Below the pieces are notes generated by a model. The model was not told the DNA's origin and ran no database searches. It was given only the letters and a program-made list of their open reading frames with translations. A program made the translations under genes and the position numbers. This document shows, piece after piece, positions 51,136 to 58,795 of a stretch of 64,000 bases of DNA (position 1 is its first letter; each line of letters begins with the position of its first letter). This DNA is from Epithemia pelagica (lineage: Eukaryota; Protista; Bacillariophyta). The stretch covers positions 2,170,001 to 2,234,000 of the forward strand of contig OX337236.1 of NCBI GenBank assembly GCA_946965045.2. The letters run 5' to 3'.

Positions 51136-51825
51136 TTATTGCTCCTCTTCCCCTGATACCACTCCTGCACTAGCCAAGCACGAGGCAAACACTCGAGACG
51201 GCAGCGAGATTTCTTCACATACAAGAGCAATCGTTTGTGCACGTTGGATAGGTGATAAATATGGGTAAGCAGTGTCCTCTTGGATTTCCATGACAGCATC
51301 TGTAATATCTCGTCTCCGCAGCTTCTTGTCCAATCGGATGCGACGAATGGCCGTCTTTTCCAGACCAGTACGACCAGGAAACTCGTTTGAGAGCAACTGG
51401 TGGAGTCTTTCCATGTCATCGCTGCATGTTGCAGTCGGAGTCTTGCAGCTAGTTTCATATAGGCGTTCCAACACGCGATTGTAGGATTTAGGGTCGTTGA
51501 GGTTTCCACGCTCTCTTCGAATGACCATTTTCAAGGCGTCCATATGACGGTTCTTGAAAGTTTGGTACTCATCTGCTGTGTACCACATATGAGCTGTCTC
51601 GTATCTGTCGTTGTAAGGGCTTTGATAAGACAAATTTGACTTTTCTTGGAAAGATACTCGTCTCCGACATGATTCTTTCTTCTTTTGGAGACACGCCTCG
51701 TGAACATCAACAGTGGATGAAACTGATCTGTCGTCGGACAAGTTTGTTGGCTCAATGATCATCATGACGTTTTGATAGCTTTTGTTTTGCGGTCTGATCT
51801 TTTTTGTGAGACGATTCGGGATCAT
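51136..51825 (-). CDS. Hypothetical protein (229 aa) of a family common in diatoms
   Basis: RRRVSF...MWYTADEY..FK...GLEK pattern typical of a large diatom hypothetical family; intact ORF. Confidence 0.75.
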   Translation of the reverse strand: MIPNRLTKKIRPQNKSYQNVMMIIEPTNLSDDRSVSSTVDVHEACLQKKKESCRRRVSFQEKSNLSYQSPYNDRYETAHMWYTADEYQTFKNRHMDALKMVIRRERGNLNDPKSYNRVLERLYETSCKTPTATCSDDMERLHQLLSNEFPGRTGLEKTAIRRIRLDKKLRRRDITDAVMEIQEDTAYPYLSPIQRAQTIALVCEEISLPSRVFASCLASAGVVSGEEEQ

Positions 51826-52071
51826 TCGTCACTACGAGCCCCTGGTTTCCCAAAATTGGAAGAAAAACTTGTCAAAATCGCCAGCCATCGCAATCAAACC
51901 GCCAGGCGTACTGAAATTACATGGCACGCGTGCAATAGTAGAAAAACTCTTCCAATCTCACTTACATAAGCCATTTTCCGAAAGAACCGTCTCGATTCTT
52001 CTTCCGTTTCTTGAACGGTACTAGCCAGATCGGTTCCCTCTCACCCACAAATCAATCACGATAGTCCTAAA

Positions 52072-53907
52072 ATGCCAATGGACGAAAGCAATGAACAAGA
52101 ATCAATCTCAGAAGACGACAGGAAAGGAGAGGAGAAGAACAGCAACAATCCAACACACAAAGTAGCCGTCATGACGTCTCCCCCGATATACATCCCGGAG
52201 CTCGATGACACGCTTCGTGAAGGAACGTTCGTGCATCTCCGACTTCCAAGCCAGAACAAGAACAAAACAACCATTGGTCGTCTACAACAATCAAACAATG
52301 GAAACATTGTCATTTCAATTTGGCGGCCGCTTTTCCCCAAGAACAGCAAATGTCACCCATCCATTCCCAAACACCAACATTCACCCATTATCCAAGGATT
52401 CGGCTCGGAGAATGAAGAGATTTTCCAAACCAACACCGTTATATCCGACCGCGACGCGATGTACAGCGGCACCAAGATTCTTTTTCCGGCTTTTGTATTC
52501 TCCCTAACGGAGTTGGCGAATCCACAAAACTCCTGGGGACAAGGCCTCAACAACGTTTACATCGCGCGTTACATGCAATCCGAAATCCGTGGACGAGAAC
52601 GACTCATTGAAATACCGGACGACGAACTACTCTGTTTCCCGATGCAGAAAAAGAAGAAGAAGAATCCTAGTGGTCTAATCGTTCCACCTCGATGCTACCA
52701 CCAGAACGTTTGGTGTGGTCTATTCCAACTCCGAAAGGGGATTATGAAGATCCTGAATAAGCGGAGTGGGCAGTCCGAAGACCAGGAAGTTGACAGTGTC
52801 TCTATCGGCAATATCCCACTAGAGACCTTCGACTACCTACATGTTGTGGGGAATTCAGGTACAGAAAGGCTTTCGTGCCGTATGTTTTCCTCCAGTGAAA
52901 CTTACCTTGATCTTGATTCTAACCTTACTCGCCGTAAGATCAGAATGTCTTTTCAGAGCGGCATCCTTCGTTTCGAGACGATGCAGGATTTAGATATTCT
53001 CCGTCACCTGTTGGGTATTGCCTCTGTTTACGGATCGTCGGAACACCGTCTGACATTGGCAGATGGGAAGCATGGCCATCCGTTGAAGCGTGGACATTTC
53101 CTGACCGTAGTGAAAGGGAAGGAAAAGGACGATGTAGAAGATCATACTTTCAAGCGCAGAAGCATGAGCCAACGTGTCGACCTTTGCTTTTCTCCCTACC
53201 AAGTAAAGGTGACCGTTGGCTTCGAACGCTACCGATACGACCACGATCACAAGGGCCGTCTCAAGTCCACCCCGCCTACAAGGCACCCGCAAGCCGTGTT
53301 GGCCTGCAGTGCATATGAACCAGAAGCCGAATCGGGCAGTTGCAGTGTGTCTGACGAATTGTCGGAATTCAACGAATCCGAACATCATAGAAAGGAAAAA
53401 GCCGAAGACGACAAGTCTGTGTCTACCTTTGACCGCATTCTGAACGGGTCGCTGGACTCGTCTGAAGACAGCACCCCAAGCAATAGCAGCAAGAAGAAAA
53501 AGACCGAGGACAATTCGGACGACAAACTGTCTCTCCATTCTCATTCGGACAACGTACGTTTTCGTTTTGGGGATGTGGATATTTACCAAGGAGACCAATT
53601 CCATCTTGATGGGACAGTGTATGAGATTGTAGGTCTCTTCCTTCCATCGGACCAAGTAAGGTTTGTTATCCAAGAGCAATTCTCGACCGAGTTGTATACT
53701 TCATCCAAACCCGCAACTTCGGAGAAAGAGTTGTCGGACAAGAGTCTTGCCCGTGTGGGGACGATTGCTCCTTCGGAACAACCCACCTATGGATGTATTG
53801 TATGTGGAGGGCATCGGTTGAACAAGAAGAAACCCCCGACGGAACAAGAAATCGCCTTATTCCAACATACTGACACCCTTCTTTCCGCCATCAAAGAATA
53901 CAATTGA
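52072..53907 (+). CDS. Accessory protein of the Transib-like element (611 aa), possibly with a BAH-like N-terminal domain
   Basis: Intact ORF inside the TIRs; LREGTFVHL...EEIFQTN...ILFPAFVFSL..L...VYIARY resembles the BAH pattern by eye; acidic/Ser linker and C-terminal CIVC. Confidence 0.65.
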   Translation: MPMDESNEQESISEDDRKGEEKNSNNPTHKVAVMTSPPIYIPELDDTLREGTFVHLRLPSQNKNKTTIGRLQQSNNGNIVISIWRPLFPKNSKCHPSIPKHQHSPIIQGFGSENEEIFQTNTVISDRDAMYSGTKILFPAFVFSLTELANPQNSWGQGLNNVYIARYMQSEIRGRERLIEIPDDELLCFPMQKKKKKNPSGLIVPPRCYHQNVWCGLFQLRKGIMKILNKRSGQSEDQEVDSVSIGNIPLETFDYLHVVGNSGTERLSCRMFSSSETYLDLDSNLTRRKIRMSFQSGILRFETMQDLDILRHLLGIASVYGSSEHRLTLADGKHGHPLKRGHFLTVVKGKEKDDVEDHTFKRRSMSQRVDLCFSPYQVKVTVGFERYRYDHDHKGRLKSTPPTRHPQAVLACSAYEPEAESGSCSVSDELSEFNESEHHRKEKAEDDKSVSTFDRILNGSLDSSEDSTPSNSSKKKKTEDNSDDKLSLHSHSDNVRFRFGDVDIYQGDQFHLDGTVYEIVGLFLPSDQVRFVIQEQFSTELYTSSKPATSEKELSDKSLARVGTIAPSEQPTYGCIVCGGHRLNKKKPPTEQEIALFQHTDTLLSAIKEYN

Positions 53908-53941
53908 AGATATCGACATAATCCTACCTTAAACTATATAT

Positions 53942-56900
53942 TTACACTAACCAATCACCAACAGAATCATCTGTAGAGTCTGATAGGTCATCGGCGTCAG
54001 AGGTTTTCCCATCCAAGGCCTGTGGTCCGATATGCCAGTCAAAAATTCCAAATCCTTCTGAATACGACACATGACTGTCGACGTTGTCATTGTTCTCACC
54101 ATCATTATCGTCGCTATCTTCCATAGCAGCAACATCCAAACTGTCGTCTTGAGAGTTTGTCAACGCACTTGCCAGTCTTTCCAATTGTTCATCTAGGGTT
54201 TCTTTCCGTCCGTCTACCTCTTCAGCTGTAGCCCCGGCCGTTCCTGTTGATGCCTCTCGAACTAAAGATTCAATCTCCTCCTCCACAGTCTCAGTTGCTC
54301 TATTGGTATAATTGGTGTTGTTGCGTCGGTCATTATTGTTAGTTCGATCGTTGTTCTCGTCGTCGTCACTGGTCGTCGTGCTAGAATCTGACGACGAATC
54401 GGGTAAGGGATTCTTGATGAATTGTCCAAACTCGATTTTCCCTTTGTTGTTCCTAACCCAGTTTCGATGTTTCTCCTTGTCCTCCTCTGTCAAGGACGCC
54501 AACTCTTCCTTGATACTCTCCATGGTATGCCCCATAGTGAATATGAGACGCCGTTGCAACCACTTTGCCATCGGCATGAGACGACTCCGTTGACCACGTC
54601 CTTGATTCACCGAGCCCCCACGCTGTGTTCTTGAATAGAAAAATGACTTGAAGAGGCTATTGAATGCCTCCCATCCCTGTTGCGAGTGAGCATACAGGCT
54701 CTTCCAGTGCAGAAGGTATTCGCCAATGTGGGCACTGCCTATCAGGTGCGCATAGTTCGTTATCCCTTCCTCGCCGTAAAGGATAACCCACTCTTTGAAA
54801 AAGGCATCGGCAAGTCGTTGATATTCGTAGATTGTTTCGTCGCTTAGTTCCTCCTTTCGAAGAAGGATCTCCATCGAGGCCTTGTAGTTTGCCATACACA
54901 CTAACCACCTCGTCCTGTCCACCTCCTTGACAATACATAGCTCTATAATCTTCTCGATCTGAGCAACGATTTTCGGAATCTTCGTATTCTCGAATTTGAT
55001 CTCTCCCATGGCGCTCTTGGTTTTGTCAAACGGAAGATTCTCCTGGAAAGGCATGGACGGCGAGCCGAGAATCTCTTGATTCAATACGTCCTCGATGCAG
55101 GAAACAAAGGCAGAACGTTTCTTTTCCATGTTACCGTGAAGGGCCTTGTCTATCCAAGCAAGTTTATTGTACTTGCAGTTGGTAAGGCCCGTCTTCAGAC
55201 ACATCTGGAGGATCTTAATACCCATCCTCATCTCCATATGCAGGAGACAAGGAATGGTATCCATAAGCATCACCAGTGCTGTGGTGACAGAGGCTTCTCC
55301 GTACCGTTTGACGGTTGTACTAGCGTCAACATACGCCCACTCGGCAATCAGCTGCAGTTTCAATCGCCGTTGGCGTGAAACCAGTGATCCACCGAGATCA
55401 AGTCCGCGTAGCTGTAAATCGTGATTCAAGTTCTTACTGTATTCTCTTCGTTGTGCTTGATCGGCCCTGTCGACTCCAAAATGGATTGAGGATAGGTCCT
55501 TTTCTATCTGGTTCCTTGTAGGTGGTGCTCTGGGATCGATTGCAGCGGATATAGCAATCTTGCAATCGCTCCATATCGTGGATATGTCCTCAGCAATCTT
55601 AGGCATCGCGTCCTCGAACGTTTTCACTTGGTCGTTCATTTTCTTCATGTGTTTCGGAGTACACATTGGGGCGTGGTAGCATATAGTGCCCTTGTCATGT
55701 GCCAAATAGTCTTGATGTAGGCACCATTTGCATTGACTAGGCTTGCCCACTTCTGTATGAAGGGCACCGCTCTTTACAGTACATTTCGCACATGGGTACG
55801 TCGCGTTCTTGGCGGCCCCACCTTTCCCCGACAGTTTCCACTCCACGGACATATCGCAATTTGTTATGACTTTCAGAGCCATAATCGCGTACATGGTGGG
55901 GAGCACTTTGTTCGCTGCCTCATTGATTTCCCTTATCATTCGAGAGAATAGTGCACGAACAAGGGCCTTGTTTTCTCTGCCAATGACGCAGACCAACGGA
56001 AAGACCATGTCTCGTGATTGGGCCTTCAATGGACTGTTTTTGTCATTAAACTTGAGGCCACCGAGAACGTGGCTTAAGTGTTTGGATAACGTAGCCCCAT
56101 CCAGACTTTGTGCAAACTGAATCGCTCTTCTCTTGGCTTCCCCATCCAACATGTTGGCAGCTTTCAAGATAGCAACAAATACGTCCGCGGCACGGAAGTA
56201 AAACCCTTCCGAACCATCCTTTGGGTTCTTGATTGGGTGGAAGGGTACGACATAGTCCGCGAATTGCTCAATGTAGGCAGCGCAACGTTGAATTGCCGAA
56301 GTCGACGGAATCATCGTATGCTTCTTTGTCGGTCTGCCTCCGCATTCGACTGTCCGTAGAACCTCAACCCCTGCATAATTCAATTTCCCTCCGGCCATGT
56401 CCATCTCTTTTAGAATGTTAAAAGGCGTAAAGATGGTTTTCCTTAGGTGTCGTTGGACCACTCGTACCAAGCAATCACTGAGTTGGTTGTGATGGATGGG
56501 GTCTTCCACAAGCATCCGAGATATTTGTCCAAAGAACTTTTTCGCCCGGTGACTGTTGCCCTTGTGGTTCCTCACGGATTCTACTATTACTGATTTAATG
56601 TGAGACACAAGCTTTGTCATATTGTCATCCGAGGAACAGGTGGAGGGGATCTTGCCATGCTTCGCTTCTAAGGACTTGATCCGTTTCTGGAGTTTGTTGA
56701 TCTCGCTTAGGTTACTTGCCATTTTCTTTTGTTGCTTCTTGAACTTCTCTCGCATGCTTCTATTCTTCTTGGAAAGGGACTCTATCTCCTTTCGTAGATC
56801 TCGATTAGTTTCCTCACTCTGGAGTAGGGCATTCACAGTTTGGGTATGGACTTCGTTCGTGGTTGAAGTTCCTTGCCATTCTTGGCATACAGTCGCAGTC

Positions 56901-57682
56901 TGAGAGTCATTAGTCGCAGTCCGAGATTCATTAGTACTAGTGTTGTTCACTCGAACTTCTGGACGGTCTGGAGTGACTTCTTGAGCAGTTGTGGGATCTT
57001 TGCTATTCGGAGAATTTTCTGTGCGTACGTTTTCTTCAGTTTCTGCTTCTTTGGATTCGTCGTCCGACGTGTCGAAGCACGAGTAGGTGTCGAGTTCTTC
57101 CTCTGTTGTCCTCATTTTTTTCTTTTTCGAGACACGATCTTCGCTAGTCTCCGTAGGGGGCGCCTTTCTTGTTCTATTGTCTCTCTCCTGTGTTTCTTTC
57201 TTCTTGGATTTTGGTTTCCCTTTGTTGTTCCTTGTGTGGGGTTTCCGTATTTCAATCTTGATTCGGTCTGATGGCTGTATAATGCTTGTGTAGCTTGCCT
57301 GGCATGTATAATGTCCATCTTTTGCCTTGCGGTTCACGGTTATTCCGTCCGATTTTTCAATGTCGTCAGCATCCTTGCAGTTACTGCAAAAGAAGAATCC
57401 ACCTCTGTAGCGCTGGTATCGGTCCGAGCCGAACACGGAGCATGGTTTTGTTGTCTCTTTTTGGAATTCTCTGCATATTCTGGCCACACGTTCTCGTTCC
57501 TCGTACGAAGAAAGGATGGAGTTGCCTTGGATCCGCCGTCGGTGTCGGGTTTGTAGGTTTGGTGACGGAGGGGGGCCGTCCCTGTCGAGGTTTCCTTTCT
57601 CCTTGATTTGCTCTTCCTCCGTCTTGTCGTTGTCTATGTAAACACATTGAATGAACTCGTCTTCCGGATCTCGGCTTCCCAT
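53942..57682 (-). CDS. RAG1/Transib-like DDE transposase, 1246 aa, intact
   Basis: QSLDGAT (cf. RAG1 D600), ITNCDM...YPCAKC (D708 plus CxxC), PCLLHMEM (cf. DALHCD), ITNYAHLIGSAH...SQQGWEAFNSLFK (cf. ITNYFHKTLAH...SEGNESGNKLFR, E962); N-terminal CxxC, basic region and coiled coil. Confidence 0.8.
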   Translation of the reverse strand: MGSRDPEDEFIQCVYIDNDKTEEEQIKEKGNLDRDGPPPSPNLQTRHRRRIQGNSILSSYEERERVARICREFQKETTKPCSVFGSDRYQRYRGGFFFCSNCKDADDIEKSDGITVNRKAKDGHYTCQASYTSIIQPSDRIKIEIRKPHTRNNKGKPKSKKKETQERDNRTRKAPPTETSEDRVSKKKKMRTTEEELDTYSCFDTSDDESKEAETEENVRTENSPNSKDPTTAQEVTPDRPEVRVNNTSTNESRTATNDSQTATVCQEWQGTSTTNEVHTQTVNALLQSEETNRDLRKEIESLSKKNRSMREKFKKQQKKMASNLSEINKLQKRIKSLEAKHGKIPSTCSSDDNMTKLVSHIKSVIVESVRNHKGNSHRAKKFFGQISRMLVEDPIHHNQLSDCLVRVVQRHLRKTIFTPFNILKEMDMAGGKLNYAGVEVLRTVECGGRPTKKHTMIPSTSAIQRCAAYIEQFADYVVPFHPIKNPKDGSEGFYFRAADVFVAILKAANMLDGEAKRRAIQFAQSLDGATLSKHLSHVLGGLKFNDKNSPLKAQSRDMVFPLVCVIGRENKALVRALFSRMIREINEAANKVLPTMYAIMALKVITNCDMSVEWKLSGKGGAAKNATYPCAKCTVKSGALHTEVGKPSQCKWCLHQDYLAHDKGTICYHAPMCTPKHMKKMNDQVKTFEDAMPKIAEDISTIWSDCKIAISAAIDPRAPPTRNQIEKDLSSIHFGVDRADQAQRREYSKNLNHDLQLRGLDLGGSLVSRQRRLKLQLIAEWAYVDASTTVKRYGEASVTTALVMLMDTIPCLLHMEMRMGIKILQMCLKTGLTNCKYNKLAWIDKALHGNMEKKRSAFVSCIEDVLNQEILGSPSMPFQENLPFDKTKSAMGEIKFENTKIPKIVAQIEKIIELCIVKEVDRTRWLVCMANYKASMEILLRKEELSDETIYEYQRLADAFFKEWVILYGEEGITNYAHLIGSAHIGEYLLHWKSLYAHSQQGWEAFNSLFKSFFYSRTQRGGSVNQGRGQRSRLMPMAKWLQRRLIFTMGHTMESIKEELASLTEEDKEKHRNWVRNNKGKIEFGQFIKNPLPDSSSDSSTTTSDDDENNDRTNNNDRRNNTNYTNRATETVEEEIESLVREASTGTAGATAEEVDGRKETLDEQLERLASALTNSQDDSLDVAAMEDSDDNDGENNDNVDSHVSYSEGFGIFDWHIGPQALDGKTSDADDLSDSTDDSVGDWLV

Positions 57683-58004
57683 TGTGATCAGTCAGGGCAG
57701 GGCTATGGTTTGGTTCTTGGGTATCAGCTTTCTCTCTTGACTAAGTGACCACTGGTTTCGTAAGGGGAGAGGGAAGGGTCATCTCTTCGTATGGGTTGGT
57801 CCAATTTGTGAGATAGAAGAGGCCCAATCATCAGTTTAGAATCGACGATTCATTGACGAATAAAAGGCGACTGGGTACTTATGCTCTAAACGGATTTTAA
57901 TATATTTTATGTTCTGGTGCGCGCCAGTCATATTTCTTTTCTCATAAAATTGGTGTTCGGGGCATCTACTTTCCGTTGGCTTTGGAGGGTTATTGCCGGG
58001 GTCG

Positions 58005-58077
58005 GACCCCCCATGTAACGATTATCCAAGCTTCTCTATACATCAAAGAAGCTTGGATAAAACTTACATGGGTGGTC
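58005..58077. other. Long hairpin inside the right arm of the Transib-like element
   Basis: TTATCCAAGCTTCT (58022-58035) pairs with AGAAGCTTGGATAA (58047-58060); outer CCCATGTAA/TTACATGGG and GACC/GGTC extend the stem. Confidence 0.8.
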
Positions 58078-58795
58078 GGATGGTGTTGATCCGTTGGATT
58101 TGGCTGTCAAAGTCAGAATGGGAGTTTTCGTGATTCTCAACGCTATGTCACGTCTTATACTTAACTAAAAACGCTTCTGTTGATTAACTCTATAGTGAAT
58201 TTTTAGGGTTCCGATTTTGCGAGCATGGTATTTTGGCCATGCTTGCGTTCGGGTTGGGATATGAGGGGCTCGTAGTGTCTCATTTTTTTGCCCGTTCGAA
58301 AACCGGGAGTCGCGAAACCAGCTCAGACTCTAATAGGTAGGCGACGCAGAGACCGGAGCCGGAGGACGGAGGAAGTGTAGGATTTGGGATTGAATGGGGG
58401 ATCGGGGAATCAACCAATAATCTCCTTATATCGTTATATTCTCCTAGTGCTACCAGCTACCAGCTAAGGTACCAGCAAAAGGAATGGGCTCCGAGAGAGT
58501 TTCCTTAAACTGCGATGCGATGCGATGCGAAAAATCCTGAAGATAAGACCAACCCTCAACTCTCGCCTTAGGGTTAGTCTTTCTTTGGAACGGATTCTAT
58601 CAAGTGCTCACAACTTCCGTCGTTTACAGCTTCCAACAGCTCAGACCACAGACAAGCAACCCTTTGCCTTTGTCTGATTGCTCTTGATAAGAAAGCTATG
58701 CCGCTGTTACCGCTTTCTTTCTGAATTATGATGACCTCCTGATGCTACAAGTAGTGGCACGAGGACCAAGAGAGGGCTTCTAGCTTCCATCCCTC

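Follow-up and report, generated by a model that had tools for sequence, protein, structure and literature searches.

Antibody genes are assembled by RAG1, which together with RAG2 is the textbook case of a transposase and its accessory subunit turned immune recombinase. RAG2 is the non-catalytic subunit that couples the RAG1-fold nuclease to chromatin, and its PHD finger reads H3K4me3. Elements of the CMC (CACTA/Mirage/Chapaev) superfamily have CACTA-like tips and short target-site duplications (TSDs), which are 2-4 bp long in the Repbase classification, and there are two genes in CACTA. These systems are the closest described counterparts of a 6,448-bp element at positions 51830-58277 of a 64,000-nucleotide stretch (hereafter, the window) from the diatom Epithemia pelagica (GenBank assembly GCA_946965045.2, contig OX337236.1, positions 2,170,001 to 2,234,000 of the forward strand). 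The element is probably a DNA transposon of the cut-and-paste type, intact and autonomous, that belongs to a lineage not previously described and encodes a transposase of the RAG1 fold and a partner protein with a predicted BAH domain.

A first-pass annotation of the window, made from the sequence alone, had likened the element to RAG1 and Transib and regarded Transibs as known chiefly from animals. That view is outdated, because Transibs have been reported in bacteria, fungi, plants and ctenophores, and the stramenopile Aureococcus has been reported to harbour a RAG-like (RAGL) transposon that possesses a true RAG2L and is flanked by 5-bp TSDs (Tao et al. 2022, PMC9435367). The Aureococcus element was subsequently treated as a divergent RAGL (Martin et al. 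2023, PMC10629977).

Structure, copies and ends of the element

Two intact, convergent open reading frames (ORFs) were situated between terminal inverted repeats (TIRs). The transposase gene (53942..57682, reverse strand) encoded 1246 aa and the partner gene (52072..53907, forward strand) encoded 611 aa, their stop codons being 34 nt apart (53908-53941). The TIR arms, located at 51830-51853 on the partner side (forward strand) and at 58254-58277 on the transposase side (reverse strand), were 24 nt long and 88% complementary. Their first 14 nt, the tip CACTACGAGCCCCT, were exact at both ends and absent from the rest of the window, where 0.09 matches with up to two mismatches would be expected by chance. 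The tip was followed by a short spacer and a TCCCA box, and the spacing of box and tip was equal at both ends. The intact 1246-aa protein, the intact convergent partner, the 34-nt gap and the CAC-starting TIRs, all of which the first-pass annotation had recorded, were present, and the convergent two-gene layout that it had compared with ProtoRAG proved to be conserved across the family.

The window's own locus was on ctg1261l of assembly ERZ21939226. Over 5.85 kb, a second copy (L003; ctg1353l, L003:6371-12751) showed 75 mismatches (98.7% identity), and its flanks were unrelated; similarity broke off precisely at the tip on the partner side and no more than 8 nt from the tip on the transposase side. 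This second copy was defective: it had lost 496 bp by deletion (window 56992-57487) and gained approximately 490 bp by insertion near window 54311, changes that truncated both gene calls, whereas the window copy was intact. Among genomic contigs from three runs of the same organism, depth inside the element was approximately twice that of the flank; joints of the L003 type were observed, as was a loose end, at 51830, that matched the L003 flank. Recent transposition is therefore supported by the presence of L003 at a separate locus, by the doubled depth, by the joints and by the loose end, and the earlier suggestion of possible activity gains from this evidence of recent movement.

At least 10 diverged lineages were present in one genome, most of them as a single copy in the assembly. 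Diverged lineages with their own TIR pairs at equivalent positions comprised L001, L002, L084, L085, L087, L089, L091 and the metagenomic L029. TIRs were not found for L086, L090, L051 and L076, and among the metagenome loci, the contigs of which were mostly incomplete, a TIR pair was seen solely in L029. The TIR pair bounds other copies, as had been anticipated, since similarity between copies stops at the tips. On the partner side, similarity to L001, L002 and L003 started exactly at the CAC, and element ends further out were ruled out for this reason; the transposase-side TIR was likewise delimited by the inverted repeat and by similarity to other copies. In another diatom, Attheya sp. CCMP212, short EukProt and MMETSP records belonged to a 90% cluster with a 973-aa family member, which suggests that a relative is transcribed and supports a diatom host range.

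Comparison of lineages also showed that the non-coding ends were conserved. The partner-side subterminal region (51854..52071, forward strand) was kept between three lineages (alignment A5), and the approximately 570 bp on the transposase side (57683..58253, reverse strand) were strongly kept, with a mean column identity of 71% across three lineages (alignment A6). The preservation of this transposase-side DNA despite saturated synonymous sites points to cis-acting sites. Within it, a palindrome at 58002-58080 had 34-nt arms, 85% complementary, and an 11-nt loop; it was kept in L001 and partly in L002, and a search of the non-coding ends, palindrome included, against Rfam returned only a sub-threshold match to a miRNA-precursor-like hairpin.

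In both genes dN was 0.21-0.23 (0.23 for the transposase against L001) with synonymous sites saturated, and by these substitution estimates both are under strong purifying selection. Such selection, and the fact that most lineages are single-copy in the assembly, would also be seen if an old transposon had left behind a domesticated, immobile pair of host genes; but the TIRs have been retained and co-vary with the protein clades, the subterminal non-coding DNA is conserved, at least 10 diverged lineages share one genome, and a 98.7% identical copy exists elsewhere, with similarity ending at the tips. Domestication is thus highly improbable.

The sequence of the tip co-varied with protein clade (CACTACGAGC, CAATAGCAGC, CAATAGGAGC and CATTACGAGC), and CA-N-TA-S-S-AGC was all that the tips had in common. 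The CAC tip first noted in the window copy was shared by L001, L002, L003 and L029, but was not family-wide: L084, L085, L089 and L091 had CAA, while L087 had CAT/CG. The window copy reads CACTA where other lineages read CACTT/CACAA, CAATA or CATTA, and sister lineages begin with sequences that include CAATAG and CATTAC.

The 5-bp TSD that had been expected was absent, with identical flanking 3- to 6-mers occurring in 0 of 10 copies, the two youngest included, and an identical 2-mer in only one. TSDs of 2, 3 and 5 bp were sought both by eye and by script, and none was found. Instead, a single flanking base appears to be duplicated: the base abutting each tip was shared in 9 of the 10 copies, while bases further out agreed in 1-4 of 10 (binomial P ~6e-5). 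In the window copy this base was T, at 51829 and 58278, the left and right copies of a putative 1-bp TSD. It derives from the target, because it differs between the two near-identical copies in element-fixed orientation. If one T is the duplication, the empty site of L003 reconstructs to a 10-bp palindrome, ATGATATCAT.

Two further observations concern the surroundings of the copies. A 229-aa ORF at 51136-51825 (reverse strand) had its ATG 4 nt from the left TIR tip, and the element therefore lies directly upstream of the start of that gene. In L002, the stretch adjoining the copy on its upstream side (L002:2308-4749) contained two genes, one of the PIF/Harbinger type (DDE_Tnp_4) and one with DUF6818.

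The transposase and its structural relatives

Relatives of the transposase were numerous, with 42 close ones and 4080 cluster representatives at E ≤ 1e-3. Searches of Pfam and of PDB sequences, using the single transposase and profiles of 38 and 44 relatives, returned nothing informative, only coiled-coil noise. Among the 82 members (38+44), RAG1 Pfam families were unmatched at E ≤ 0.1-1, as were Transposase_21, Plavaka and the other CMC families, and the 38-sequence profile had no match to PDB sequences at E ≤ 10.

Comparison of structures was more revealing. The catalytic core (residues 395-1065; 54488..56500, reverse strand) was modelled with AlphaFold2 from alignment A2, giving a pLDDT of 88 and a pTM of 0.82. 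When this model was compared with the PDB using Foldseek, the first 49 chains returned all belonged to RAG1, HzTransib or BbRAGL (best E = 1.7e-10), and the first other fold, that of the P element, followed at E = 0.04. VIA-align gave Z scores of 21.6 for HzTransib, 21.0 for RAG1 and 19.3 for BbRAGL, against 11.9 for the P element, 8.9 for ISCth4 and approximately 7 for Hermes; RAG1 was covered over residues 459-1004, that is, from the DNA-binding/dimerisation domain through the C-terminal domain. The RAG1/Transib-like character that had been proposed from motifs is therefore corroborated at the level of fold. The accompanying proposal of a RAG1/Transib-like lineage holds for the fold and not for the sequence, where no link was detected, and predicted Transposase_21 structures were equally similar.

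This last comparison used predicted-structure libraries because, to our knowledge, there is no solved structure for the CMC superfamily. TM by query was 0.59 for RAG1 clusters and 0.56-0.58 for CACTA-type Transposase_21 clusters, models of which aligned with the core over 481-487 residues at TM 0.58; unnamed rotifer and Mucoromycota clusters scored slightly above the RAG1 clusters. Among AlphaFold DB clusters, uncharacterised proteins alone were matched (E = 1e-13 to 1e-8). By protein-language-model features, RAG1 families ranked first (0.91-0.94, with 173-198 shared features), and clusters carrying DUF1280 or DUF1258 were among the structural and feature neighbours. A second feature search, which left out the RAG1 families and DUF1280, returned a cnidarian cluster with a minor SAP share (0.91), Transposase_21 (0.86, with 123-132 shared features) and Plavaka (0.83).

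Residue conservation was assessed with a 44-sequence alignment (A4), in which D528, D610, C631, C634, C651, C654, C668, H815, N976, Y977, H979 and H985 were invariant. E1005 was invariant in A2 and nearly so in A4. D428 fell just short of invariance and is positioned ahead of the RNase H strands. The RAG1-like order of motifs given in the first-pass annotation was present and conserved across A4, except that the two histidines are five residues apart, not four. The candidate first catalytic aspartate, D528 (56099..56101), was invariant in A2 also and falls in the first RNase H strand (model strand 128-137); the candidate second, D610 (55853..55855), is located just after the fourth strand (model 210-215) and 21 aa before the CxxC motif. 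Both codons were checked. The candidate glutamate, E1005 (54668..54670), is 20 aa after H985 and within a model helix (610-625). Candidate zinc ligands are C631-x2-C634 (55781..55792), the counterpart by spacing of RAG1 C727/C730, and H979 and H985 in TNYxH-x5-H (54728..54748), the counterpart of H937/H942; all of these motifs are on the reverse strand. The spacings D-x20-CxxC and HxxxxxH-x19-E mirror those of D708/C727/C730 and H937/H942/E962 in RAG1 (reference residues partly after bioRxiv 10.1101/698332). The catalytic residues are thus most likely D528, D610 and E1005, with a zinc site likely formed by C631/C634 and H979/H985.

Two features were noted towards the N-terminus, both on the reverse strand. 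A Cys/His-rich region (aa ~80-137; 57272..57445) with the pattern CxxC...C...H contained residues near-invariant in alignment A1 (F98, C99, C102, C127, H131 and P137) and may be a zinc-finger DNA-binding domain. Its conserved motif, FFFCxxC...C...H, precedes a coiled-coil segment (aa ~282-358; 56609..56839) that was recognised through weak coiled-coil matches in Pfam and PDB.

These results bear on whether the element genuinely belongs to the Transib/RAGL lineage, that is, a deep sister of RAG1L and Transib in which RAG2L was replaced or never present and the stagger changed. The best solved-structure matches were HzTransib, RAG1 and BbRAGL, RAG1 families came first by language-model features, the D...D-CxxC...HxxxxxH...E spacing is very near that of RAG1, the window copy has CAC tips, and a RAGL element is known from another stramenopile (PMC9435367). 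Such membership is nevertheless unlikely: the 38-sequence profile had no similarity to RAG1 or Transib at E ≤ 10 and RAG1 Pfam models were unmatched, the 5-bp TSD was missing in 10 of 10 copies, the tips of sister lineages were CAA or CAT, the partner had BAH rather than Kelch matches, and Transposase_21 was equally similar in shape.

Placement as a divergent member of CMC is decidedly unlikely as well. No match to Transposase_21, Plavaka or other CMC Pfam families was obtained in the 38+44 members, the feature score was 0.86 against 0.94 for RAG1 (123-132 shared features against 173-198), the 2-4 bp duplication was unseen (k = 2 in 1 of 10 copies, k = 3 and k = 4 in 0 of 10) and sister lineages start with CAATAG or CATTAC. 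These points outweigh the resemblances that such a placement would explain, namely the CACTA reading of the window tip, the shortness of the duplication, the alignment of Transposase_21 models over 481-487 residues at TM 0.58, the next-best rank of Transposase_21 and Plavaka once RAG1 families and DUF1280 were left out, and the neighbouring clusters with DUF1280 or DUF1258.

Tested for membership of Transib, RAGL and CMC in turn, the element could be assigned to none of the three. Transib/RAG membership is unsupported because Transposase_21 models equal RAG1 in shape (TM 0.58 against 0.59); instead, the models and the language-model features would place the transposase in a structural group that holds Transib/RAG and CMC alike, with a modest lean to the RAG1 side.

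The partner gene

In each of the 11 genomic copies that were fetched, the partner adjoined the transposase in convergent orientation, and the distance between stops was 30-75 nt in most of them. Both ORFs were intact in 9 of these 11, the exceptions being L002 and L003, in which the partner was degenerate. By tblastn, the partner was also found in 21 metagenome loci. In a distant clade with approximately 25% transposase identity, a convergent ORF of 400-412 aa was homologous to the partner (hhalign probability 83%, E = 9e-6, 221 columns). This clade comprised freshwater metagenome contigs (L035-L083, e.g., L051:1814-5851), and its ORF matched the middle part of the diatom protein. Pairwise identities of transposase and partner were correlated (Spearman 0.68), and both genes gave the same sister pairs. 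Therefore, the linkage of the genes, the homology of the distant-clade partner, the correlated identities and a dN of ~0.2 with saturated synonymous sites show that the two have long moved as a unit and diverged in step.

Eighteen homologues of the partner were identified, and it had no Pfam match at E ≤ 1, the BAH family included. The AlphaFold2 model (pLDDT 72) comprised an N-terminal BAH fold (aa ~33-195), a conserved middle domain of unassigned fold (aa ~205-415), a linker that is acidic and disordered, and a small C-terminal beta-barrel (aa ~490-611). With Foldseek, the N-terminus was matched to SHL, EBS, BAHCC1, PBRM1, ORC1, Sir3 and DNMT1 (E = 1e-4, probability 1.0); with VIA-align, the top 18 matches were all BAH domains, over model residues 33-195 (Z = 5.4-8.9). 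The C-terminal barrel had weak KOW/Tudor/SH3-like matches (Z = 4-5), and for the middle domain neither shape nor features gave a meaningful match. RAG2 or Kelch chains were absent from the Foldseek and VIA-align matches; the partner is thus not RAG2, in line with the first-pass suggestion of an independently recruited gene. As modelled, the partner would be an obligatory, co-diverging accessory subunit with a BAH-type chromatin-reader fold, and it is in this capacity that it enters the interpretation preferred here.

In the mechanism envisaged, the transposase is a DDE enzyme of the RNase H fold with a core built like RAG1 and Transib transposase, in which the putative order of domains is dimerisation/DNA-binding, pre-RNase H, RNase H, zinc-binding insertion and C-terminal domain. 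It would recognise the 14-bp tip (CA-N-TA-S-S-AGC across lineages) together with the conserved subterminal DNA. Judging by other enzymes that share this fold, excision would probably proceed by a nick and then a hairpin on the flanking DNA, and reinsertion would occur with a 1-bp stagger. The partner may tether or license the transposase on nucleosomes, in which case it would be a functional analogue, though no homologue, of RAG2 and its PHD finger.

Relationship to known transposons

Several points weigh against interpreting the element as an autonomous transposon of a distinct lineage with a RAG1-fold transposase and a BAH partner. The shape match to Transposase_21 equals that to RAG1, such that position within the wider group is not fixed by shape. 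The evidence for a 1-bp duplication is statistical (P ~6e-5), because no empty site was recovered: a flanking-gene lookup gave the filled locus alone and there was no empty allele among the genomic contigs. Furthermore, L029 does not fit the pattern. A search for RNA runs that contain the element found none. The catalytic assignment derives from spacing, conservation and secondary structure rather than from a residue-level superposition on RAG1, while the BAH match is at the level of predicted fold (no Pfam BAH, TM by target ~0.4, Z = 7-9, pLDDT 72).

A more specific and tentative proposal can be made. The family is possibly a separate, superfamily-level branch between Transib/RAG and CMC with an independently evolved two-subunit recombinase, in which a RAG1-fold nuclease is joined by a chromatin-reading BAH subunit that licenses cutting or integration on particular nucleosome states. 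RAG1-RAG2 would then have a convergent counterpart, one that has a unique 1-bp stagger and is still active in diatoms. The family bears on why a RAG1-type enzyme gains a chromatin-reading partner, since in it a nuclease of the RAG1 fold is paired, for a second time and independently, with a protein of putative reader type; the pairing is kept down to approximately 25% transposase identity, and the question is therefore testable outside animals. The comparisons of shape suggest, in addition, that Transib/RAG and CACTA-type enzymes are one structural group. The family has gone undetected by Pfam and has 4080 cluster representatives, and the intact, recently mobile diatom copies offer a possible transposon tool.

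Compared with Transib, as represented by HzTransib of Helicoverpa zea (PDB 6pqx), the fold of the whole core is alike (Z = 21.6, with 414 of 480 residues aligned). Both are DDE enzymes with a Cys/His zinc site, a predicted one in the present family, and belong to TIR-bounded cut-and-paste elements, and the window copy shares the CAC tip. However, sequence similarity is undetectable, the TSD is 5 bp there and 1 bp here, and Transib has CACNNTG tips and one gene where the present family has CA-N-TA tips and two. The insertion between CxxC and HxxxxxH, estimated from motif spacing, is also much longer, at ~345 aa against ~207 in RAG1.

Among RAGL elements, amphioxus ProtoRAG (BbRAGL, PDB 6b40) has a similar RAG1-like fold (Z = 19.3) and likewise contains a second, convergent gene within one TIR pair, while AanRAGL of Aureococcus (PMC9435367) likewise has a stramenopile host. 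The partner described here differs in having a predicted BAH fold without Kelch propeller or PHD finger. The 5-bp TSD and the 12/23-like asymmetry of TIRs are absent, box spacing being equal at both ends of the window copy, and RAG1 Pfam models fail to recognise the transposase. With respect to CMC elements (CACTA/EnSpm, Mirage, Chapaev and Plavaka), predicted Transposase_21 models are similar in shape (TM 0.56-0.58), the tip of the window copy is CACTA-like and its duplication short, and CACTA is likewise multi-gene. Against this, there is no Pfam or HMM match, feature similarity is below that of RAG1, the duplication is 1 bp rather than 2-4 bp, and the partner is a putative BAH protein rather than one of TnpA type.

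Like RAG2, the accessory protein appears to carry a fold of chromatin-reader type, although Kelch and PHD domains are unrelated to BAH and the likeness would be one of function alone. Full-text literature searches turned up no account of a transposase of the RAG1 fold paired with a BAH protein, nor of Transib-like elements in diatoms, and the ends and one-base insertion mark match no described RAG, Transib or CACTA element. Within reach of those searches, the element is an undescribed, new variant of DDE cut-and-paste transposon, which combines an enzyme of the RAG1/Transib fold with a predicted BAH partner, CA-N-TA tips and a putative 1-bp duplication.

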